Shown here one piece after another: positions 1-13,474 of a stretch of DNA of 13,474 bases; the first letter of the stretch is position 1; each line of letters starts with the position of its first letter. The DNA lies in the NCBI RefSeq assembly GCF_006345805.1, contig NW_021826303.1, positions 1 to 13,474 on the forward strand. The letters are read 5' to 3'. The DNA is from Octopus sinensis. Lineage: Eukaryota. The translations under genes and the position numbers were made by a program. The notes under the pieces were generated by a model. That model searched no databases and was not told the origin of the DNA. It saw nothing but the letters and a program-made list of their open reading frames with translations.

Positions 1-274
1 CTAAAATAATTCATGTGCTCCTGAGAGATTGTTAACCAAACGCCTATTGTATTCTAAATATACATACATGTGTCACCATGATTGATCGCTAGCCATTAAA
101 CCTTTTTTCTATTTTCTCTCCTTGTTTATTTCTGAGTTCCTTTCTGATGAAGAGCGCAGGCTCGAAGAGTAAAAGACTGACTTCCCGAGCGTTAAACCAA
201 TACATCAGTTTGTTGTTTACGCATCCGTGTTCGTCTCTGCTTTTTGTTTTGTAAATTCCAACTATATATATATA
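1..274 (+). mobile_element. Short interspersed repeat resembling a Penelope-like element terminal repeat, carrying a hammerhead-like motif
   Basis: Shares TGTGTC(A/G)CCATG(A/C)TTGA and CCTTT.TG.TGAAGAGCG(C/T)AGGCTC with the inverted copy at 10322-10456. Contains CTGATGA-A-GAGC/GCTC-GAAG at 144-167 and ends in a TA tract. PLE assignment is inference from the known PLE-hammerhead association. Confidence 0.55.
140..175 (+). ncRNA. Degenerate minimal type I hammerhead ribozyme motif
   Basis: Stem I CTTT 140-143 / AAAG 172-175; CTGATGA 144-150; extra A151; stem II GAGC 152-155 / GCTC 160-163; GAAGAGTA 164-171 instead of GAAACGTA, so this copy is probably inactive. Confidence 0.5.
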
Positions 275-1598
275 GCCACTATTTGTTGGCCCACGTTCTG
301 CAATTTAGTTATAGTTTTTCTGCGGGGGCAAAGCACTAAATAAGGACTCAGGAATTGGGTAACAGATATAGAGCTAAATGAACGTGAAATGCATTGGTTA
401 GTACCAGGAAACCTGTGTGTTTAGATATGTATAAATCATATTATATGTGCATAAAACATACACGGTTATATAGTATAGTCTGGGATTTGTATATCATTAA
501 AAACAATCTAGATTTTCTAGCTCATGATATCAATATCTCGTTTCTCATTCTGCATTTTGTATCATATAATTATGTGAACAGCGATGGGCAAGTACTCTAA
601 TCGTGCTGGAGAATAACTGGGTAGTTACGGACGTGAAACTATTTGAAACTTTTATATTCATGGTACACCCACATACAATTATGCTTACGTATATACATAC
701 AGAAATGTGCATGCATGCAAAGACAGGTATTTCAATATAGATAAATATTTCACATCATTCATATTCAGTGCAACATTTCTTGAAGTTGTGATAGTTCCAT
801 CACGTTGATGTATATGCATGTGCCGTCCAGGAACAGCAAAAATAACTAGTTACTTCGTCAATAAAATAGATGAAAATGTCACTTTGCTTCGAGGTTTTGA
901 TTGATGGTGGTGCTCAATCCAACACACAACAAACACCAGAAGTAGCTATCTACCACGAACGTAATCTCCTATCTTCCCACGCATCATGAAATTTGGTGTG
1001 AAAAAGCATTTCTAATGAAATCTTCAAGAATATATTGACATGACAACCTCACAAAAGCCCATAAATATAAATACTAGAATGAGTTCGAACTTTTGTATAT
1101 AAATAATATTGGTGGTTTATTCAACAAAAACAGTAACAGATACAAAGGATTTGTTATTGCCCTATGTGACAGAAAGTAATAGATAATCACTGGTAAGATG
1201 TCCAGCTGCCAAACTAACTTGAATATATAATCTAAATTCGGTAAAATGGGAATAGCTCCGGTGAACTTATGATGAATATCCAGCTCTTGTGTCAAGTTTA
1301 TGGAATTTAATTTGTTCCCATTCTTATAGTTGTAAAAAGAGATATAACACCAGTTCAGCCAAAATACTCCACAATAGTAGGATTCCTTAATGTAGAACAT
1401 GGGAGAATGAGTTGACCAATCTCTGGTCGAAACATATCTAAGTTTTATCTATAATTTGAAACTGACTTATTGGAAGTCCACCTGAAGATTGTCGATCAAG
1501 ACAAGAAACGATGTAGTGGCGGTTTTTTGACTATTTATTAAATTTTATGTATTGATTAAGTCTTTCCTTGTTGGTTTGCAAAATAGTGGTTTTGTCTC

Positions 1599-1631
1599 TA
1601 ATAAATTTTATATATATAATATATATATACA

Positions 1632-1672
<41 letters not shown>

Positions 1673-1810
1673 ATATATACTATGACATACAATATATATA
1701 TATATATATACATACATATATATTTACATACAACATATATATTTACATAGATACATATATACATACATATATATATACATATATATATACATACATACAT
1801 TCATACATAC

Positions 1811-1848
<38 letters not shown>
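1599..1848. repeat. Compound (TA)n/(TACA)n microsatellite
   Basis: Seen directly; explains the IYIY-type ORFs at 1531-1911. Confidence 0.97.
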
Positions 1849-1849
<1 letters not shown>

Positions 1850-1857
1850 TTATGTCA

Positions 1858-1935
1858 GGTCACTTTCGAGTGCTACCGGTAACATGTAACCCAATACAAC
1901 CTGTTGCATGATCGGGTCGTCTGCGACTAAACCGG
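1858..1935 (+). ncRNA. Candidate HDV-like self-cleaving ribozyme, non-canonical variant
   Basis: Hand fold gives the HDV strand order: P1 GGTCA 1858-62 / TGATC 1909-13 plus TGC 1871-73 / GCA 1906-08; P2 CCGGT 1876-80 / ACCGG 1931-35; P3 AACA 1881-84 / TGTT 1902-05; GGG 1914-16; P4 TCG/CGA 1917-26; J4/2 CTAA 1927-30. Confidence 0.5.
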
Positions 1936-2398
1936 CAACCCCACGAAGTTTGCTTGGTGAGGAGAGTGTTTATTGGATACCCTACAGGATGAAAAACAAA
2001 ACCTGTCAAAGGGCGGAGGAACTCTTGAGAGTCAACGGCAATCCAATAAATGTGTTAAGGCTGTATCACGTGCAGAGACATAGCAATAATCGGACTGAAT
2101 ACACGATCGCGCGGTTAAACCAATGGGAGTGAAGGACTCCTAGCCTGTGTTAGGGCATCCTTCTAGGAGAAGGTAACTCAGGTAACTGGGTTAACTGCGA
2201 CAAAAAAATCTCAGTGGTTACCGATGATGTTGACTTGTTCTTCTTTTCGGATTATGGCTGCTGCTGCTTCGTGAGTGGGCTTGACTCAGTGCACAGCCTT
2301 TCCTCACTTTAAAAAAGATCTTCTTGCACAGGCTTTGCACGATAACATTGATAACGCTTCGTGCAATGGCCATACTTGATAATGAGGGGGCAGCCACC

Positions 2399-2400
<2 letters not shown>
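1858..2400 (+). mobile_element. RTE-clade LINE-like 5' UTR fragment or non-autonomous derivative
   Basis: GC-richer block bounded by TA tracts on both sides. Contains GGGCATCCTTCTAGGAGAAGGTAACTC (2153-2179), which I recall as a typical RTE 5'-region motif, and a structured 5' end. No RT or endonuclease ORF follows. Confidence 0.55.
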
Positions 2401-2435
<35 letters not shown>

Positions 2436-2440
2436 ATATA

Positions 2441-2924
2441 AACAATTGGAGCCTGGAAGGTGTTTATAAGCCATCTAAGAAACGCACAAAAACCGTTAGA
2501 TTCACTTCAACGTATAAATTTAATTCGTCAAAATATTTTCGTCGCTTTGAGAGCGCGACCTGTTTACTGACAAAATTCTGTGCTCTAATAAGCACCAGTA
2601 TTGCTCGAGATAAAAGTCAAAACAACTCAATAGCCATGAAAATCATTACTTTATTGAGTGACAAGGGAGGTATGCTCCCTACAGCAGCCAGATCATCGAT
2701 GATTTCGCATTTCCTTTAATGCTTATCAGTGCCTCTTATCGCGCCTAGGGCTAAACTTAACTGGCCTTGTCAGTTTATGAGATTTCCGTTGAAATCGCAC
2801 CCTGATTTCATAAACGATAAAAGGAAAGTATCACAAATAATGCCGGTGGCTTATCCGCAATTTTACAACTCACTGTCATATGTAATAACGGTTATAGTAC
2901 ACTTTGCCTGCTGCTGCCGAAATC

Positions 2925-2927
<3 letters not shown>
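2441..2927 (-). mobile_element. Unclassified interspersed repeat between TA tracts, possibly Penelope-like terminus
   Basis: Sharp TA-tract boundaries at both ends. Minus-strand hairpin GTCGC/GCGAC (2559-2541) is followed by GAAA-ATAT. Resembles an abundant octopus repeat from memory. Confidence 0.4.

Positions 2928-2998
<71 letters not shown>
2928..2998. repeat. (TA)n microsatellite
   Basis: Seen directly. Confidence 0.97.
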
Positions 2999-3307
2999 CA
3001 CGTGTGTGTATGTATGTTGTTGATATAAAAATATGTGTGTGGTGTTGTGGTAACGGAACATGTTTCAACTACGGTAGTTGTGCGATTTCGGCTATAGAAT
3101 CTTATTATTGAATAAATTATAAATAAATGTCTTGTTTACAATAAGTTCTAAGAGAAAAGATTTATTCTAATCCGCATTAGTTTAAAAAGCACAATATGTT
3201 CTGTATAAGTGAATTAAATATTTTTCCGAAGTATGCATTTCTATAGGGATAACAATAACTTTAATTGTAATAAGAGTAACAATCATATTTATATACACCG
3301 TGCACAT

Positions 3308-3351
<44 letters not shown>

Positions 3352-3353
<2 letters not shown>

Positions 3354-3537
3354 CGCATGAGTGGCTGTGTGGTAAGTACCTTGTTTACCAACCCCATGGT
3401 TCCGGGTTCAGTCTCACTGCGCGGCACTTTGGGCAAGTGTCTTCTACTATAGCCTGGGGCCGACCAAAGCCTTGTGAGTGGATTTGGTAGACGGAAACTG
3501 AAAGACGCCCGTCGTATATATGTATATATGTATATAT
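3352..3537 (+). mobile_element. tRNA-derived SINE, 5' half
   Basis: A-box-like TGGCTGTGTGG and B-box-like GGTTCAGTCTC, then TTGGGCAAGTGTCTT and GGATTTGGTAGACGGAAACTGAAAG, running into an internal TA/TG microsatellite. Matches my recollection of a common octopus SINE. Confidence 0.85.
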
Positions 3538-3689
3538 CTCCAAAAAGGAGAAGCAAAATTCCACCACGGCCGCTACTTTAAACAGACACTCGCTCTGACG
3601 GAAATATGCCTTAGTAAAAAAGGAAAAAAATTCTTTCGTGCAAATCTGACCCTGATACATACGATACAGCTAAGGGTCAGACCCGATTC

Positions 3690-4053
3690 TGATTGGTCAA
3701 CAAGTTGATGACGTCTAGCTCTGCTGGAATGGACAGGATACAAACAGGGGACAGTCATTAGTCAGAATATTGATGACGTCCTTTTCTGCTTGACTAGTCA
3801 CTTAACAAGTACAGACAGGGGGCAGATCTAATGTAGCTATAAGTCGTGATTGGGCAGAATCTGGATGACGTCCAGTTCTGCTTGACTAACGAAGCGACTG
3901 GTCAAAACAGGAAACAAACAAGAGGCAGTTATAATGCAGCGATTGGTGATGACGTCCCATTCTGCTTGACTAAAGCCACCTAACGAAACGATTGGTCAAA
4001 ACGTTGATGACGTCACGCTACGCTGGATTGACCACCTAACAGGCATTATAAAA
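3690..4053 (+). promoter_or_regulatory. Pol II promoter-like array: 5x (ATTGG ... GATGACGTC) plus TATAAAA
   Basis: GATGACGTC at 3707, 3772, 3864, 3948 and 4006; ATTGG/ATTAG at 3692, 3757, 3849, 3942 and 3991. Spacer is 10 nt in four of five units. TCTGCTTGACTA follows three units. TATAAAA at 4047-4053. Confidence 0.7.
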
Positions 4054-4261
4054 CCGAGCACTGCACAAAACCCACTAGAACCACGCAGCGAACATCCACC
4101 ACGGGTCATCACAATTGCTTAAGGTAATAATGAATTCCTCGCTCTTTCGGAAACGTCAATCTTCTGTATTGACCGCTTTCCACCACTTTGATCTGTTTTT
4201 TGTATTGAATACGTATCGCCACCGTGGGCCACTGCATCGAACACTTTGAACATATACTTCA

Positions 4262-4307
4262 AACTATATCAACTATACATGAACTATATATCAACTATAC
4301 ATGAACT
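4262..4307 (+). repeat. Short tandem duplication AACTATA(TA)TCAACTATACATG x2
   Basis: Units at 4262-4281 and 4282-4303, plus partial AACT. Confidence 0.9.
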
Positions 4308-4486
4308 CTAAGATGTCTGACTCCGTTGTGTATTATAAATGAATTTCTTGTGTTTGACGGCATGAGCTGTCTCTTTTTATATATAATTTTTTTGGTAAGG
4401 TTCATTTCAGGAACTGAAACATGTTATAATGTATATATAAAATTAAAAATTGTATAATACAGCAGCATTTTCGAACTTCATTTTTT

Positions 4487-4541
<55 letters not shown>

Positions 4542-4765
4542 GCGCGTGTGTGTTTGTGTGTCTGTGTTTGTCCCCCTAGCATTGCTTGACAACCGATGCT
4601 GGTGTGTTATGTTCCCCGTAACCTAGCGGTTCGGCAAAAGAGACCGATAGAATAAGTACTGGGCTTACAAAAGAATAAGTCCGGGGTCGAGTTGCTCGAT
4701 TAAAGGCGGTGCTCCAGCATGGCTGCAGTCAAATGACTGAAACATGTAAAAGAGTAAAAGAGAGT
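4542..4765 (+). mobile_element. tRNA-derived SINE, 3' half of the family at 3352
   Basis: TG microsatellite, then TGTTTGTCCCCC...GCTTGACAACCGATGCTGG...AAAGGCGGTGCTCCAGCATGG...GACTGAAACA and an (AAAAGAGT)-type tail. Linkage to the 5' half comes from the recalled family consensus. Confidence 0.75.
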
Positions 4766-4786
4766 ATATATATATATATAATAAAA

Positions 4787-4914
<128 letters not shown>

Positions 4915-5338
4915 TGTTCTTCTTATTATTTTTATTATTTAGCAGAATTAACAGCGTGACTGAAGAATATACCCCCACACACATGTAAATGCACACACAT
5001 TCATATGCTTACGAAGCGTGAGATGTATAAATCAAAGATGAGAAAGAAGAAAGAAAGATAGATATATGCATACATACATACATACATACACAAATCGACA
5101 CAGGGTGAAACAGAGAACGAGAAGGGCTGTTATTAGCATCCTGTGTTATCCGATGCTCTTTCGAATTTCGATCGGAACAATTTATTAAACCTATGAATTA
5201 TTTGTTTTTCCTTTGTTTCTGCCAGTTCCATTATCCTGCTTGTAATTCTCAAACATTAAAATACTATCATATTCCGGATACTTTCGGCGAACAGCCTCAT
5301 GGGAATATATTTGCCCAATGATATTTGCGATTTAAACA

Positions 5339-5736
5339 AAGCGGCAATCTGGCAGAATCGTTAGCACGTCGGGCGAAGTGCTTAGCATTATTTCGTCTGC
5401 CGCTACGTTCTGCTTTCAAATTCCGCGAGGTCGACTTTGCCTTTCATCCTTTCGGGGTCGATAAATTAAGTACCAGTTAAGCACTGGGGTCGATATAATC
5501 GACTTAATCCGTTTGTCTGTCCTTGTTTGTCCCCTCTGTGTTTAGCCCCTTGTGGGCAGTAAAGAAATAGGTATTTCGTCTGTGTTTACTTTCTGATTTA
5601 AAACTCCGCCGATGTCGACTTTACCTTTCATCCTTTCGGGGTTGATAAATTAGATACCAGTTGCGTACCGAGGTCGAACTAATCGCGAAGCCTCCTCCCC
5701 CCAAAATGTCGGGCCTTTTGTCTAGAGAAACAAATA
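5339..5736 (+). mobile_element. Dimeric tRNA-derived SINE with 18-bp target-site duplication
   Basis: Head TGGCAGAATCGTTAGCAC. Core GTCGACTTT(G/A)CCTTTCATCCTTTCGGGGT(C/T)GATAAATTA occurs twice, with the second unit starting at ~5570. TSD ATAT(T/A)TGCGATTTAAACA at 5321-5338 and 5737-5754. Confidence 0.9.
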
Positions 5737-5964
5737 ATATATGCGATTTAAACACAGTGTCCATTCAGATATTTTAAATATAATCTTGATAAGTGTAAAT
5801 GCATGAAATGCCTGCCCTTGCTTCACTCCATGCTTCTGCTAAATATTCATTCTATTTTTCACGTTTGCAACATCATATCTCCAATTGTTGTTTCCATGTT
5901 TTTGTTTTCTTAATAGAAATCAAATGACTCCGTATTAAAGAGTGACCATTAATGGAAAATACAA

Positions 5965-6188
5965 TATTCTTTTCTTTTCTGCTCTAGAGACAAGGCCCGA
6001 AATTTTTGTGGAGGGGGACCAGTCCATTAGATCGACCCCGGTACGCAAATGGTACTTAATTTATCGACCTCGAAAGAATGAAAGGCAAAGTCGACCGTAG
6101 CAGAATTTGAACTTAGAACATAAAGACAAACGAAATACCGCTAATCATCTTTGTCGGCGTGCTAGCGTTTTTGCCAACTCGCCGCCTT
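5965..6188 (-). mobile_element. tRNA-derived SINE monomer, same superfamily as 5339, with 13-bp TSD
   Basis: Reverse complement of the same core (TTTATCGACC.CGAAAG.ATGAAAGGCAAAGTCGAC). TSD ATGGAAAA(T/C)ACAA at 5952-5964 and 6189-6201. Confidence 0.9.
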
Positions 6189-6212
6189 ATGGAAAACACA
6201 ACTTGAAGGTAT

Positions 6213-7444
6213 TATTGGAAAACCCAATAAATAATGTGGTGCTTTTAATTTCATGAACTAAAATTCGGAGTGCAGCAAGATAAACTACCCGTGTCTAAAA
6301 GCAAGTAATAATTCTAAGTTGCACGTATTCCTAGTGCATGTTTTGAAGAGGGCAATTCGATTTTAACAGTTATATATTCAACAGCATATTCGTCATATTT
6401 TGCTTTATGAGTTCAATAAAGGCAACAGCACAATGGAAGGTGTGAGGAATATTAACGCAGTATATGGGGGTCGAAAAATAAGAGTAAGGCTATGTCAACG
6501 GTGGTTTGAGAAATTTCCAGCCGGAAACTACTGCCTAGAAGTTGAGCCTCATACTGAATGATCTGTAGAGCTCGACGTGGACGTCCTGCAAACCCTGGTG
6601 GAAGAAACTCCTACCGTGTTCATCGAGGAGCTAGCACATAGGTTTAGATTTGATCATTCAACCATTCATCAACAATTGGGTGCCATTGGTAACGTCAGCA
6701 GATTGGGTCAATGGATTCCTCACAAACCTTCCCAGTCTAATCGTGCGCAGAGAGCGAATGTATGTTCCTCTTTGCTCTTACGTCTCATGAATGAACTTTT
6801 TTTAGACCGAATAGCGACTGGTGACAAGTTGACAATAGCGTCTGGGTTCTCTATAAATGTCAAGCGCTGAAGACAGTGGTTAGGGAAAGGAGAAACAGCG
6901 GCGCCCCAGTGTAAAGAAGGTCTTCACCCACGTAAGGTGCTGTTATCTGTTTGGTGGGATGTGAAGATTTAGTATACTTTGAACGTTTAGACCAAAACCA
7001 AACGATAAATCAGCACTGGAAGAAAAACGACCATCTTCGGTATGGAAACGAAAAGAGTTCTGTCATCAGAATAATGTTCAGCTACGTAATATGGGGATGC
7101 TAAAGGCTTGAGCAGTTTAAATGGGAAATGATGTCCCACTCACCATATTCGAGGGACATTGCCCCATCTGATTATCAGTTATTCAGCAGTCTTCAAAATC
7201 ATTTGGACGGAAAAAATATGAATACTGTAGACGGGGTCAGAACAGTACTGGAGGAGTATTCTTCGTCACGGGCAAGTGAATTCTGGAAGAGGGGATTTCC
7301 AAGTATATGAGATAGCTGGAAGAGCATTGTAGAAAATGACGGAGAGGATATTTTAGATTAAAAAAGAAATTTAATTTTTTTTTAATTTTGAAAAATATAA
7401 GAAGTTTAAAAAAAAACGCATCATTCGTGGGATGACCAAATTTA
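6213..7444 (+). mobile_element. Decayed mariner DNA transposon (~1.23 kb)
   Basis: Transposase remnants inside. Degenerate TIRs: TATTGGAAAACCCAATAAATAATGTGG versus the reverse complement of CGCATCATTCGTGGGATGACCAAA. Ends are approximate. Confidence 0.85.
6379..7361 (+). pseudogene. Mariner transposase pseudogene
   Basis: Translated fragments HIRHILLYEFNKG, CQRWFEKF, WIPHKP (WVPHEL motif), FLDRIATGD, LHPRKVLLSVWWD and HSPYSRDIAPSDYQLF (YSPDLAPSDY motif). Has in-frame stops, frameshifts, an insertion near 6830 and a deletion near 7020. Confidence 0.92.
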
Positions 7445-7479
7445 TTGCTATAGTTATTTCTTTCAAAAGGAAACAAACA

Positions 7480-7680
7480 TCGGTTTAGAATTTTGGCACA
7501 AGGCAGGCAAATTTAGGGGAGAGTCTAAATAGATTACAGTAAGTCTAGGATTCAGTTAGCCTCTTTTTATCGACCCCGAAATGATGAAAATCAAAGTTGA
7601 CCTTGGTGGAATTTGAACTCGTGAAAACGAACGAATACCGTTAAGTATTTCGCCCGACATCCTAAGAATTCTGCCATTTT
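7480..7680 (-). mobile_element. Older degenerate SINE copy of the 5339/5965 family
   Basis: TTTATCGACCCCGAAATGATGAAAATCAAAGTTGACC...GGAATTTGAACTC...AATTCTGCCA aligns by eye with 6060-6180. Confidence 0.8.
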
Positions 7681-8337
7681 AAGTGTAATAAATATGAAAT
7701 GACTTTTAGAAGATTAATATTCATTACAAAAATTCTATTCGATGTTTTTGCGCATGGAACATTCAATTTTAATTATTATTTTCCTTCTAAATTTTCCATT
7801 TAACACGCAAATAATTATTTAACTGAAACGACAATTGTCGATATGATCTTAGTTGGAAACATTTACACAAATAATTGAATTACAATGTTTTAAGTGAAAT
7901 ATTATAAAAGTTAGGACAACTACTTAAATGAATCCTTGATTATATAAATGGGAAACGTTCACAAACCATTTAACATAATTGCAAGTTACAACTTGAAGTT
8001 CTAGAAATCGTATTTATAAAATTTACTTTGTGTCACTATAAACATTATACAATAATCACAATAATTATATACGTATATATTTAAAATATCTTTTTAAAAC
8101 TGGATAGCTTCGAATAGATATTTTATCGACATCTTAGAACCTTCGAGTCCTAATATTTAAATCAGATTTGAGCGTATGTTCTGCTTTGAATATTATTAAA
8201 TAATTCTGAAGTAACTTCAAGTTTTTATCTTGCAGTCATTATGTTCAGACTCTATATTCTGAAGCAAGCAAACATATGTAAACATGGCCACAAGATATTT
8301 TCATAAAGTCGAGAACATATGACATTTTACAACGATA

Positions 8338-8595
8338 TTAGACGATAGTAATTACACCGAGGAAGAGGGAATTACTCCATAAATGACAAAAGTTTGGTTC
8401 ACTTCGTTGTTCATTCCCAACAAATGATCGTTTCTGAATGTTCGCTCTACTTAGCAGTATATCGCCTCGTTTGCACAGAAAGGGAATATAGCAAGATGTG
8501 ATTGTGTTGTTAAGAAACTCGCTTCCCTTAGGAAATTGTTTTCCAGTATTATGACGGGTTGACCGAAGCGTCCTCAAAGCATTTTGGAGAAGAAA
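8338..8595 (-). CDS. Candidate coding exon of an unidentified gene ([16 protein letters not shown]...)
   Basis: Acceptor gtcttatttcag at 8596-8608 followed by 85 open codons in phase 0. Downstream end is uncertain: possible donors after 8376, 8358 or 8356, or the stop at 8338. Confidence 0.45.
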
Positions 8596-8608
8596 CTGAA
8601 ATAAGACG

Positions 8609-8622
8609 TGTATATATATAAC

Positions 8623-8653
<31 letters not shown>

Positions 8654-8826
8654 GTGTGTGTGTGTGTGTGTGTGCGTGTGTGTATATATATGTATATATA
8701 TATATATATACATACATATATACATACCTACGTATATACATACATACATACATATATACATACATATATACATACATACATACATACATATATACATACA
8801 TAATACATACATATATACATACATAC

Positions 8827-8887
<61 letters not shown>

Positions 8888-8980
8888 CATACATATACAT
8901 ATATATACATACATATACATATATATACATACATATATATGTATGTATATATATATATACATATATATACACATATATAT

Positions 8981-9040
<60 letters not shown>

Positions 9041-9050
9041 GTGTATATAT

Positions 9051-9106
<56 letters not shown>

Positions 9107-9108
9107 AT
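8609..9108. repeat. Compound (TA)n/(TG)n/(TACA)n/(CA)n microsatellite
   Basis: Seen directly; source of five spurious ORFs. Confidence 0.97.
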
Positions 9109-9480
9109 ATAAGCTGTCTCTGATTAAACATTATCTTCTATTATTTTAAAATTTTATACAGCATATTTTTATGATTATCATTTCCCACTCAGTGGGAGAT
9201 AACCATTATAGCTAAACCGAAGAATGCATGAACAAGATGTTAGCTCTGTATAGAAAAGATGTCCAAAATATCTACATCGAGACTCAAATTAACTAATAAC
9301 AGGCTGAAAGAAGTCAAAACTTTTAAGAAATTTAACGAACGTTGTAGAATCACATATCCTAAACTCCACACATACGTGAACTTTTCATAACCAACATATA
9401 TATTTTATCTACTTTCTATCGATCAGAAGAGCACCACTGACACAAATATATGTGAAAAACTAGAAACATTAGATAGGACT

Positions 9481-9853
9481 GGAAGCACTCCGTCGGTTAC
9501 GACGACGAGGGTTCCAATTGATCCGAATCAACGGAACAACCTGCTCGTGAAATTAACGTGTAAGTGGCTGAGCACTCCACAGACACGTGTACCCTTAACT
9601 TGGTTCTCGGGGATATTCAGTGTGACACAGAGAGTGACAAGGCCGGCCCTTTGAAATACAGGTACAACAGAAACAGGAAGTAAGAGTGAGAGAAAGTTGT
9701 GGTGAAAGAGTACAGCAGGGATCACCACCATCCCCTGCCAGAGCCTCGTGGAGCGTTTAGGTGTTTTCGCTCAATAAACACTCACAACGCTCGGTCTGGG
9801 AATCGAAACCGCGAGTCCGCTGCCCTAACCACTGAGCCATTGCGCCTCCACAG
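9481..9853 (-). mobile_element. tRNA-derived SINE (third family) with TSD
   Basis: Minus-strand head GGAGGCGCAATGGCTCAGTGGTTAGGGCAGCGGACTC with A box at 9829-9839 and B box GTTTCGATTCC at 9799-9809. TSD ATTAGA(T)AGGACT at 9468-9480 and 9854-9865. Confidence 0.88.
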
Positions 9854-10104
9854 ATTAGAAGGACTACAGTTGAAAGTAAGGTTATTATGTCTCCGACCAC
9901 TTCAGTACACAAGGCACCCTGCTAAAACAGTAATATCATCCTCGACCCGATGAGATAGATTCCTGATAGCACTATATATATATATATATATATACATCAT
10001 ATAATTAAGGGCTAAAGAGGGTTATTCTAAAGCCAAATACACTGTTTTATCCACTTATAATCCGCTTGTTACAGGAAAATTGAAACTGAAAACGGGCAAC
10101 TAAC

Positions 10105-10158
10105 CTTTAGAAAATTTAAATTTCGTTATCTCTATATTGAATCAATTTCGGACTTAAT
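10105..10158 (-). CDS. Candidate 54-nt exon (LSPKLIQYRDNEI...), in-frame stop as assembled
   Basis: Acceptor tcttttttttataag and donor AAG|gttagt; a 66-nt intron separates it from the 10225-10285 exon, with compatible phase 2 entry. Confidence 0.45.
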
Positions 10159-10224
10159 CTTATAAAAAAAAGATATATTCCTTCTTCAGTAGAAATTTCG
10201 ATGGGATATAAATAAAATACTCAC

Positions 10225-10285
10225 GTATGATCATGGAAAAAGCACAAGCTAAAAACATAACTACACTTGAGTACATCATTTATAT
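10225..10285 (-). CDS. Candidate 61-nt coding exon (INDVLKCSYVFSLCFFHDH)
   Basis: Strong acceptor attttatttttag and donor AC|gtgagtat; only one frame is open (entry phase 1, exit phase 2). Confidence 0.55.
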
Positions 10286-10321
10286 CTAAAAATAAAATAT
10301 ATATATATATATATATATATA

Positions 10322-10456
10322 TTTGCTATTAACAGAAAAAACTAAATACGAAAAAGTCAAATGAAGAAGCAGGTGTACTACGTTTGGAGCCTACGCTCTT
10401 CAACACAAAGGAATAGAACAAAATAGACAGAGATTAGTGGTCAAGCATGGCGACAC
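10322..10456 (-). mobile_element. Second Penelope-like terminal repeat copy with degenerate hammerhead motif
   Basis: Minus strand reads CTTT-GTGTTGA-A-GAGC-GTAG-GCTC-CAAAC-GTA (10410-10379), homologous to 140-171. Flanked by TA and CA tracts. Confidence 0.55.
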
Positions 10457-10524
10457 ACACACACGCATATACATACACAAACACACACATATATATATAT
10501 ATATACATACACACACACACATAC

Positions 10525-10561
<37 letters not shown>

Positions 10562-10575
10562 TATATTGTATAGAG

Positions 10576-10978
10576 GGCATTATTACACATAAATGCCTCA
10601 CACTAGGAGGGACAGAGTATTATAACAAAATTATACTAATCATACCCAAATGCAGTTTTTCAAGCAAGACATTTAAAAATGAATTATGTTCTGTATCACC
10701 GTGATTTCACATACAACTTGCGTTAATGATCGTCAGCAGAACTGATTATTGAATACATCATAATAATTATTTATTATTATTTATTTATGATTTATGTATG
10801 ATGTATTCAGAATCAGTTCTGCTGACGATCATTAGACGCAAGTTGTATGTGAAATCACGGTGATAAGAACTAATCATTTTTAAATGTCTGCTTTGAAAAC
10901 TGCATTTGGTATGATTAGTATAATTTTGGTAGTAATGACTCTGTCCCTCCTAGTGTGAGGATTATGTGTAATAATGCC
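10576..10978. repeat. Long inverted repeat (foldback): ~185-bp arms, 34-nt AT-rich spacer
   Basis: 10576-10762 is the reverse complement of 10797-10978, with about 15 differences by hand alignment. Confidence 0.95.
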
Positions 10979-11127
10979 ACTTTAAATATAGATATAATTA
11001 ATTGTTCAGAAGAAAAAAATTTTTTCGGATTCTTTTCTTTTATGAGGTTTCACGCAGCTAATGATAATTCTTGTTAAGATCCTTATTAAGAGATATCTTA
11101 ATGTTAAACTTATATATATATATATAT

Positions 11128-11169
<42 letters not shown>

Positions 11170-11512
11170 CGTGCATTATGTATATTATATATATCATATA
11201 TATATATAATATATATATATATATTTCGTTTTGAACATATTTCTATTATATAATCATATATATATATAATATATATATATATATTAGGAGTATAACAACA
11301 TTGCTACTGAATTAATAATAGATTTTCATGAAATGAAAAAAAAAAATACACCTATTGCAGTGGAAAGTGTTATACTTAATATTTTCTATATAGTTCGGAA
11401 TATATCACATTTCATTATAGTTATACTGTTTTAATAAGGCTGGAGGTCGGCAAAATAACAGAGCTTATAGTATATGTGTTTGGATATAAATTTACTAATC
11501 AAAACGACATTC

Positions 11513-11563
<51 letters not shown>

Positions 11564-11648
11564 TTTTATTAATTTGCAAAAACAAATATAATATACTTTG
11601 GTAACGCAAGTTATATATAAGAAAATGCAAGTTGTCAAGAATACTTAC

Positions 11649-11660
11649 TATAGATTATTT
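11649..11660 (-). CDS. Possible 12-nt microexon (or 3' part of a 73-nt exon 11649-11721)
   Basis: ctctctctcag|AAATAATCTATA|gtaagtat; perfect donor, no homology support. Confidence 0.25.
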
Positions 11661-11783
11661 CTGAGAGAGAGTCTTAGCTTGGAAACATTTAAACACTCGT
11701 TATATAAACGAATGTTATACTCTAGGGGTATAGGGATATACTTTGCAATTTTATTGGTTACTACTTATGGGAATATTCAAATA

Positions 11784-11853
11784 ATAAACACATAGAACTA
11801 ATCATATATATATATATATACTTATATATATATGATTAGTTCTATGTATTTAT
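11784..11853. repeat. 70-bp hairpin with unique arms around a TA tract
   Basis: ACATAGAACTAATCA 11790-11804 / TGATTAGTTCTATGT 11833-11847 are perfect complements; pairing extends to 11784/11853 with one mismatch. Confidence 0.9.
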
Positions 11854-11878
11854 ACATTCACACATATATATTAATATA

Positions 11879-11916
<38 letters not shown>

Positions 11917-11962
11917 GTATTATATTATTAGTTATTATTATTATTATTATTATTATGTTTAC

Positions 11963-12078
11963 AGATTTCGAAATGTCATTTTAGCATGCTTCGACTGTTC
12001 AAGAAAAGAGCAAATGCTTGTTTTGCGAGACCTTTCAGCCCTCGGCGATGTAAAAATACCATTCAAATGCAGTTTCTC
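11963..12078 (-). CDS. Candidate 116-nt exon (EKLHLNGIFTSPRAERSRKTSICSFLEQSKHAKMTFRN)
   Basis: Acceptor ctattttcaacctatag; only phase 0 is open; weak donor CT|gtaaac. Confidence 0.3.
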
Positions 12079-12262
12079 CTATAGGTTGAAAATAGAGTTT
12101 GCTTTCCTTTTGTTTTCCAAATGGACTGCCATTATATCATGTAAAAGAATCTATGTTTTCTAAGCCATTATATAAAAACTGATTTCTTGAAATTATTTCT
12201 ACGTCTTAACTGTCATATCCAGCAAATATATCTTTCCGTAAACTACGAGTAAAAATGCCTAC

Positions 12263-12367
12263 CTCTTTATAGTTGAAAATATCAAGTAAGAAGGTTAATT
12301 GTTTTAGCAGCGGGATGCCGTTATTCATTTCCACATTCATTTTCTCTCTATTCAATGAAATACAATT
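12263..12367 (-). CDS. Candidate 105-nt phase-0 exon (NCISLNREKMNVEMNNGIPLLKQLTFLLDIFNYKE)
   Basis: Acceptor atatacttag and donor GAG|gtaggc; single open frame; joins in frame to 11963-12078 across a 184-nt intron. Confidence 0.33.
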
Positions 12368-12990
12368 CTAAGTATATCATTCCGAATGCAGTAGCAGAAA
12401 TATATATATATTAGTGCAACCAGATACACAAGAAAACCAATTGCTACGTAATTCCCTGAAACTCAACAAAATAGATGTAGGTTATATGAATACAGACTGC
12501 TGATGAAACAAAGATATACCTCAGATGTATTAGTTTACTGGAAATATCATGAATAAAATAAATGCTAACTCAATGTCTATATCCAGTTTTGCGTAAACAA
12601 GTTATATAGAAAACAAATGCAGCAGAGAAGTGACAGGAACAATACAAAGTAATTAACGATATGGAAGCAACACATGAGTTAGAGTTAAACTGTCTCGGCA
12701 TAATAACATTTGGTGTTCAGAGTAACACAAAATGCATTAACATTTTATTAATTGTAGTCATTAGCTTCTAAACAATTAGCGATATACTGATAATAAACAC
12801 GTGCAAGTAATCTATTGAGATATTTAATTTGACAAAACGGTCGATTGTGCATATAACGCATATATTTTCTTTTAAGAGTTTTGGCTCAGCTTCAGCTAGC
12901 TGTAAGTTTCTAGTCAGTAATCTCCATCTATATAACACAATTTTCTGGTAACCTATAAGTCCTGACGAACACATGTGCCAGTATTCCTAT

Positions 12991-13017
12991 ATACATACAC
13001 ACACACACATACATACA

Positions 13018-13049
<32 letters not shown>

Positions 13050-13103
13050 CACATACATGCATACATACATACATACATACACACAAACATACATACATAC
13101 ATA
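12991..13103. repeat. (ATAC)n / (AC)n microsatellite
   Basis: Seen directly. Confidence 0.95.
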
Positions 13104-13366
13104 GGTAAAATTTTTGTTCCCTAATGAGATAAAAAAAAAGGCTGTGTAGATTTTTGAACATTTATAAATAGAAGGTGTTACAGCTGTTTCCAGGATATTC
13201 ATTAATTATATCCCTTCATCGGAGACGGTGTGAGGAGATGGTTAAGCAATAATTAATTTAGATAAGATACGAAATAGAGAGTGAGGTGGAAGTACGAAAA
13301 TAGATGTGAGATATGCAGAAATATTGTATTTGTAGATCCATTATTTTGGCATACATACATGCATAA

Positions 13367-13405
<39 letters not shown>

Positions 13406-13474
13406 TATATAATATATATATATATATTATTGAGAGAGAGAAAAGAGGGAGGGCTGTATAGAAGTTGAATTTTC

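Follow-up and report, generated by a model that had tools for sequence, protein, structure and literature searches.

A retroposon-like unit in a repeat-rich octopus locus

The DNA analysed here is a 13,474-nt stretch of the Octopus sinensis genome (assembly GCF_006345805.1, contig NW_021826303.1, positions 1 to 13,474 of the forward strand), referred to below as the window. Dense (TA)n/(TACA)n microsatellites split most of its non-repeat blocks (at 1600-1850, 2399-2440, 2925-3000, 3310-3350, 4490-4545, 8600-9100 and elsewhere), and its CpG content is unremarkable. No open reading frame in the window exceeds 171 aa. A degenerate remnant of a mariner (Mos1-type) transposase, interrupted by stops and frameshifts, was found at 6326-7500 on the plus strand, where Pfam identifies HTH_48 (E=1.9e-14) and Transposase_1 (E=4.5e-8); at protein level it is 55-65% identical both to a 'SETMAR-like' protein of O. 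sinensis and to ORFs from JGI metagenomes. SINE-like repeats are present at 3346-3541, 4521-4753, 5343-5517 and 5526-5677, and on the minus strand at 6021-6183 and 7566-7656, all matching a 21-kb piece of an O. sinensis chromosome (L001) with 81-94% identity. When related loci were compared, mariner matches occurred in six of six, and the octopus SINEs matched the O. sinensis piece only. In addition, a unit of approximately 43 nt whose core is TGATGACGTC occurs five times within 3689-4030, at spacings of 58-92 nt (repeat family D13).

Between two (TA)n tracts lies a further unit of approximately 545 nt, composed of a head and a family-specific body, in which the longest ORF has 74 aa. The upstream tract ends at 1848, approximately 9 nt 5' of G1858, the nucleotide at which a preliminary description of this DNA had placed the start of an HDV-like ribozyme (1858-1935). 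The tract that directly follows the unit may be a microsatellite 3' tail, a reading that is only suggestive because TA tracts are common throughout the window. The SINE head at 3351 also starts right after a (TA)n tract. This suggests that retroposons in the window insert into or end in TA repeats. No target-site duplication is readable in the TA-rich flanks of the unit, and no partner LINE was seen.

The preliminary description had suggested that the site may process the 5' end of a cephalopod RTE family. A Pfam search covering approximately 87% of the six-frame translation (plus strand outside 1-1500 and 8001-9100, minus strand outside 8001-9100) found mariner domains only, with neither reverse transcriptase nor endonuclease sequence, both of which an RTE-clade LINE encodes; in the part searched, no RTE body follows the site. 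The assignment is thus not upheld by coding sequence in the part searched, and the RTE label is plausible by analogy of arrangement, as discussed below. Other readings of the unit were considered and rejected. For a DNA transposon at 1850-2400, terminal inverted repeats were not found. A tRNA or Pol III box reading was set aside as ARAGORN calls no tRNA and the TTCGA-like box is not conserved. A LINE 3' end on the minus strand is contradicted both by the lack of reverse transcriptase in the searched part of that strand and by a homologue (L008, see below) whose AATAAA and tail fit the plus strand. Within the body, GGGTTAACTGCGACAAAA at 2188-2205 is 78% identical to GGGTCGTCTGCGACTAAA at 1914-1931, which may be chance, and the same may hold for a nearby TGGGTTAA that reproduces 8 nt of a 23-bp RTE-like Ceph-SINE motif (PMC5786205).

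The first 190 nt form a head shared with different elements

Word-indexed protein searches, run with conceptual translations of the unit in one frame and then with five more concatenated, gave no match. An exhaustive HMMER protein search with the stop-free frame 1890-2129 returned five matches. Three of these (P0011, P0012 and P0014) are repeat proteins matching in many weak stretches and were discarded as artefacts. The spurious ORFs P0013 and P0015, both singletons as protein clusters, led to two contigs from ENA metagenome assemblies, L007 (630 nt) and L008 (747 nt), that share the first part of the unit at the nucleotide level (nhmmer E=1e-55). By BLAST, identity is 77% with L008 over 1871-2043 and 80% with L007 over 1898-2045; overall the three copies are 76-80% identical over 1871/1898-2045 and unrelated beyond. 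L008 has AATAAA and then TAAAAC repeats after its body; in the window copy, (TA)n stands at the end. As 1854-2045 is shared and the bodies and tails are unrelated, this region constitutes a head common to different elements.

The homology between the window and L008 starts at GTCAGGTCA (1854), 4 nt 5' of the predicted cleavage site, and spans the whole proposed ribozyme; upstream of 1854 the two sequences differ. The module repeated in L007 begins with GATCA, the equivalent of G1858. Both boundaries support the earlier claim that the site lies at the 5' edge of an element. The two homologous contigs have further features of their own. In L007, two direct copies and one inverted copy of the head's first 50 nt (GATCAATTG...GTAG) lie within 1-315, and positions 4-219 are an 86% self-complementary foldback. 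The 5' portion of the head has accordingly also become part of a foldback (MITE-like) structure there. In L008, the element is closely preceded by a tRNA-like sequence in the opposite orientation (2-74, minus), scoring 36.6 bits with the Rfam tRNA model, above gathering; it is not called by ARAGORN.

Conservation within the head comes in blocks: one 11-mer is invariant and one 25-mer nearly so, against an identity of approximately 77% elsewhere in the copies. An indel shifts the reading frame in L007, and the bases are still conserved. This demonstrates a constraint on the nucleic acid as opposed to a protein, and a protein-coding cause of the conservation can be ruled out. The comparison comprises three sequences, each a single genomic copy and none a family consensus. 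No second copy of head or unit was found within the window, and no further head in approximately 53 kb of related DNA, made up of 21 kb from O. sinensis and JGI contigs totalling 32 kb. Nor did a further copy appear when collections of metagenome, genome and viral contigs were scanned for DNA or peptide patterns, whether exact or degenerate. Head k-mers were not found in an octopus transcriptome supplement, and in full-text literature they matched unrelated primers only.

Table 1. Coordinates of the unit, its head and the proposed or conserved RNA elements (window numbering).
Feature	Position	Strand	Basis or remark
ORF-less retroposon-like unit	1854-2398	+	head and family-specific body, ~545 nt, between (TA)n tracts
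Conserved head	1854-2045	+	common to L008 (about 152-353) and L007 (266/317-468)
P1 as proposed	GGUCA 1858-1862 and UGC 1871-1873 with GCAUGAUC 1906-1913	+	sequence
P1 5' strand GGUCA	1858-1862	+	pairs 1909-1913; standard 5/5 pairs in 3/3 sequences
P1 interruption CU-UUCG-AG	1863-1870	+	sequence
Variable J1/2-like segment	1863-1875	+	13 nt in window, 27 nt in L008, 30 nt in L007
P2, CCGGU/ACCGG	1876-1880/1931-1935	+	sequence; 5' strand pairs 1931-1935, also in the nested MFE fold
Proposed P3 and L3	1881-1905	+	AACA/UGUU enclosing 17-nt L3
P3, AACA/UGUU	1881-1884/1902-1905	+	sequence
L3, 17 nt, UGUAACCCAAUACAACC	1885-1901	+	sequence; encloses UGUA/UACA
J3/1 GCA, P1' UGAUC, GGG	1906-1916	+	3 nt before P1' unpaired family-wide
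GGG after P1'	1914-1916	+	sequence
P4 hairpin UCG-UCUG-CGA	1917-1926	+	sequence; kept in 3/3 copies; one-sided C-G to U-G; loop varies
Invariant 11-mer GCGACUAAACC	1923-1933	+	P4 3' strand, CUAA with C1927, start of P2'; identical in 3/3
J4/2 CUAA	1927-1930	+	sequence; adjoins P2'; C1927 is the putative catalytic C
Hairpin with compensatory changes	1939-1962	+	four pairs double-changed, L008 versus the other two, pairing kept
Weaker conserved hairpin	1964-1982	+	88% of cells paired
ACAGG, possible long-range partner of CCUGU 1900-1904	1984-1988	+	RNAalifold
Best-conserved block AAAAACAARACCUGUCAANGGGCGGA...	1989-2040	+	outside the proposed ribozyme
3' hairpin	2012-2024/2029-2040	+	one A-U to G-C compensatory pair
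(TA)n tract, possible microsatellite 3' tail	2399-2440	+	directly after the unit

The HDV-like pattern in the window sequence

The helices and junctions that the preliminary description listed for 1858-1935 are all present in the window sequence. A descriptor accepting this architecture finds one site, at 1858, on both strands of the window. The same descriptor, which was fitted post hoc to the site at 1858-1935, gave 10 matches in 2.4 Mb of Markov-1 random sequence (3.6-5e-6 per nt), corresponding to a chance expectation of approximately 0.10-0.13 per 13.5-kb window on both strands. A looser, canonical HDV topology can start at 26 sites in the window, most of them within TA repeats, which accords with a published caution that permissive HDV descriptors yield a glut of matches in DNA of low complexity (PMC4870747).

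The nested minimum free energy fold of 1858-1935 has an energy of -20.8 kcal/mol (z = -1.03 versus shuffles) and consists of a 5' hairpin, P2 acting as closing stem, a hairpin of 8 bp (CAUGUAAC/GUUGCAUG) and P4 with 5 bp; neither strand of P1 is left free. The nested part of the HDV model (P1, P3 and P4) reaches only +0.3 to -2.8 kcal/mol. The nested alternative is favoured over the HDV helices by at least 7 kcal/mol; P1 and P3 have pair probabilities below 0.01 in the nested ensemble, and the P3 duplex AACA/UGUU has an energy of -0.1 kcal/mol. Rfam covariance models applied to the whole window at the gathering score gave no match to HDV, CPEB3, drz or any other ribozyme. At E<=10 on 1780-2080, there was no HDV, CPEB3 or drz match and only AT-repeat miRNA noise was returned, and at E<=1 neither L007 nor L008 matched the HDV, CPEB3 or drz families. 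Support for the HDV fold from the single sequence is therefore weak.

The HDV model across the three copies

We aligned the window, L007 and L008 segment by segment, each row being a verified substring of its source. The double-pseudoknot order P1, P2, P3, P3', P1', P1.1, P4, P2' can be drawn in all three, and 94% of the cells in the model's helices are paired. P1 reads GGUCA/UGAUC in the window, GGUCA/UGGUC in L008 and GAUCA/UGGUC in L007, with two pairs varying on one side. The P1 conserved in all copies is 5 bp only, the 3-bp extension UGC/GCA being specific to the window. Three unpaired nucleotides separate P3' from P1' in every copy, and P1 neither continues into P3' nor reaches the ~6-7 bp of the HDV type. 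The claim that the helices follow one another with no slack at the junctions, made from the window sequence, consequently fails at the level of the family. The UUCG hairpin described inside P1 fares similarly: it is window-specific, and in its place the homologues carry a segment that differs in length and is unrelated in sequence, which thus behaves as a J1/2 insert.

In P2, one pair is C-G, U-G and U-A across the three copies, and L007 has lost the outermost pair. P3 has all of its pairs in the window and in L007; in L008 two of the four are A.C. The sequence of the proposed L3 hairpin with its ACCC loop is present in the window, but L3 length varies (17/18/10 nt), and the inner hairpin and its loop are missing in L007. 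The enlarged P1.1 between ACCC and GGGU can accordingly pair in the window and L008 but is absent in L007. In the canonical register no P1.1 pairing was found, and the sole conserved G of L3 lies 5' of its C's, unlike the short C-then-G order of the HDV type. An invariant possible pairing does exist between ACC 1899-1901, at the 3' end of L3, and GGU 1915-1917, with no variation by which to test it. After P1' the copies read GGG, GGG and AGG (the last in L007), hence GG is kept in all. The J4/2 C followed by A's before P2' is invariant. From the aligned sequences, the catalytic-core features needed for an HDV-type ribozyme are non-canonical and not conserved, and the UUCG hairpin in P1 and the structured L3 are lineage-specific, belonging to no conserved structure.

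The preliminary description had called for a covariation check. With three sequences, one pair, in P2, is changed on both sides; this is no excess over shuffles, 343 of 500 of which did equally well. Substitutions retain the pairing of the HDV model about as often as neutral transitions would.

Conserved structure downstream of the proposed ribozyme

The proposed ribozyme region is the 5' third of the head. Downstream, the three copies share conserved and covarying hairpins (Table 1). The nested RNAalifold consensus, which was derived from the same three-sequence alignment on which it was scored, contains six pairs changed on both sides with 94.7% of cells paired, and its covariation was reached by 1 of 500 shuffles. 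The consensus also includes the P4 hairpin and a possible helix joining 1900-1904 to 1984-1988, in which the fifth pair is U-A, C-G and U-G across the three copies. The 1900-1904/1984-1988 helix and the proposed P3 are mutually exclusive.

Comparison with known ribozymes and retroposons

Canonical HDV-like ribozymes have a P1 of 6-7 bp, a P3 of 3 bp, a catalytic C in J4/2 and a short L3 that supplies P1.1 and a functionally important G (PMC3774820, PMC3185411, PMC4908430, PMC13635239); this G is important in the R2 and C. briggsae ribozymes (PMC3774820, PMC13635239). Their classic location is the 5' end of non-autonomous LINE derivatives (PMC5786205, PMC3185411). Like the ribozymes of R2, L1Tc/NARTc, RTE and Baggins, the candidate lies at the extreme 5' end of a retroposon, follows the order P1-J1/2-P2-P3-L3-P3'-P1'-GG-P4-CNAA-P2' with a J1/2 of variable length, and has an invariant J4/2 C followed by A's. 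Unlike them, it has a P1 limited to 5 bp, with P1' preceded by three unpaired nt, an L3 of 10-18 nt (versus ~7-8) that does not have the C...G arrangement, no canonical P1.1, an A-U rich P3 that is not intact in all copies, and no covariance-model match.

RTE lineages readily yield non-autonomous elements of bipartite build in which the 5' end of the LINE is retained (Kojima 2018, PMC5786205), and RTE-type elements end in microsatellites, the octopus RTE-2_OV combining a 5' UTR of ~600 nt with a microsatellite 3' UTR (PMC9115989). In arrangement, the present unit resembles the RTE-N, RTESINE and WALLSI3 types (PMC5786205), being short and ORF-less, with a 5'-terminal module and a microsatellite end. 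A second likeness, by description, is to the LP-SINEs of gastropods and bivalves, in which one 5' head is joined to different bodies and tandem-repeat tails (PMC4758252). LP-SINE heads are common to the 5' ends of Nimb and RTE LINEs (Matetovici 2016, PMC4758252), and the authors drew an analogy with the Pr77 promoter and ribozyme of L1Tc (PMC4758252). The AATAAA that precedes the tandem-repeat tail of L008 is a further LP-SINE-like feature. The published LP-SINE head is ~70 bp, compared with a conserved region of ~190 nt here (PMC4758252). A shared 5' module, different bodies, the absence of an ORF and a simple-repeat 3' tail, all found here, are the traits of bipartite or LP-SINE-type elements.

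Function of the head and alternative explanations

We put at approximately 50% the probability that 1854-2398 is a small, ORF-less, LINE-dependent retroposon with a structured 5' module, possibly RTE-derived, that works without cleavage. We infer retroposon status, the RTE link and a promoter or UTR function for the head. The first ~190 nt would then be a structured RNA head, also carried by at least two other elements, in an arrangement like that described for LP-SINEs and for bipartite non-autonomous elements derived from RTE, whose extreme 5' end is formed by a module from a LINE 5' UTR. Such a head would work in cis as a 5' module, defining and preserving the 5' end of the transcript, and may provide an internal promoter, a structured UTR for the machinery of a partner LINE, or both. 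Within it, P2 and P4 are real conserved helices and the 5-bp P1 is plausible, whereas the core of P3, L3 and P1.1 on which HDV-type catalysis depends probably does not form in the way proposed. What speaks against a reading as 5' module only is the invariant P4-CUAA-ACC block together with the complementarity of the 5'-terminal P1, which is what an HDV-like ribozyme leads one to expect.

That the head contains a self-cleaving HDV-type ribozyme is a prediction we consider possible though doubtful. On this reading, the 5' ~80 nt would be a divergent ribozyme with C1927 as the general acid. Its P1 would have 5 bp and its P2 4-5 bp; P3 would be weak, L3 enlarged and P4 short, with a J1/2 of variable length, 3 nt in J3/1 and CUAA as J4/2. 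Read-through transcripts would be cut at or next to G1858, generating the 5' end of the element as in R2, L1Tc/NARTc and some RTE elements. The helix order kept by three of three homologues, with the fraction of paired cells given above, is consistent with this proposal, as are the invariance of GCGACUAAACC with its candidate catalytic C and A's, the GG after P1' in all copies, and an element boundary 0-4 nt from the predicted cleavage site, where ribozymes of this kind are classically located. The copies differ in length mainly in J1/2 and the P4 loop, both of which tolerate such variation in known HDV-like ribozymes (PMC4908430, PMC3774820), and the active R2 ribozyme of the jewel wasp, an outlier with a 4-bp P1, a mismatch in P3 and odd L3 spacing (PMC3774820), indicates how far an active fold can depart from the canonical one. 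Against cleavage stand the failure to match any Rfam HDV-type model even at E<=10, the long and variable L3 with its reversed order of C's and G, and the lack of a P1.1 in canonical register, the ACCC/GGGU substitute being absent from L007. The A-U rich P3 loses half its pairs in L008, and the same bases covary with 1984-1988. The 4 nt that precede the predicted cleavage site are also common to the window and L008, pairing survives substitution no more often than it would under neutral transitions, and the nested alternative is favoured by at least 7 kcal/mol. A divergent variant that has a 5-bp P1, a 3-nt J3/1 and an expandable L3 of 10-18 nt, whose invariant 3'-terminal ACC supplies P1.1, and that cleaves itself at the first nucleotides of the element, defining the 5' ends of a family of non-autonomous retroposons in octopods and at least two other genomes, appears unlikely on these sequences.

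The HDV-like pattern could also have arisen by chance in decaying transposon DNA, the copies being alike by descent with nothing under selection. A post hoc descriptor expected ~0.1 times per window, the 26 loose matches, a fold z-score of -1.03 and covariation of the HDV model equal to that of shuffles would all accord with such an origin, which we nevertheless regard as improbable for the head, given the four compensatory pairs at 1939-1962 and the one at 2012-2040, the blockwise conservation with its invariant 11-mer and nearly invariant 25-mer in copies only ~77% identical, and the presence of the same head on different bodies. Conserved hairpins that reach beyond the proposed ribozyme, with the best-conserved block at 1989-2040, are also compatible with some other functional RNA overlapping the proposed helices, either another self-cleaving class or a SINE head derived from a small RNA. 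We judge this very unlikely, since the head matches none of the Rfam twister, hammerhead, hatchet, pistol, tRNA, 5S or snRNA models in the window, L007 or L008, ARAGORN calls no tRNA, and the hammerhead core boxes are absent from the sequence.

Should the head be a structured 5' module and nothing more, as we favour, it would represent a further instance in which non-autonomous retroposons have reused parts of a LINE 5' UTR, one that fits the pattern of RTE derivatives and LP-SINEs and adds the cephalopods to it. If the first 80 nt do cleave, the HDV fold would be seen to tolerate a shortened P1 and an L3 that is much larger and variable, and cleavage would provide a mechanism by which abundant octopus retroposons could obtain defined 5' ends from read-through transcripts.
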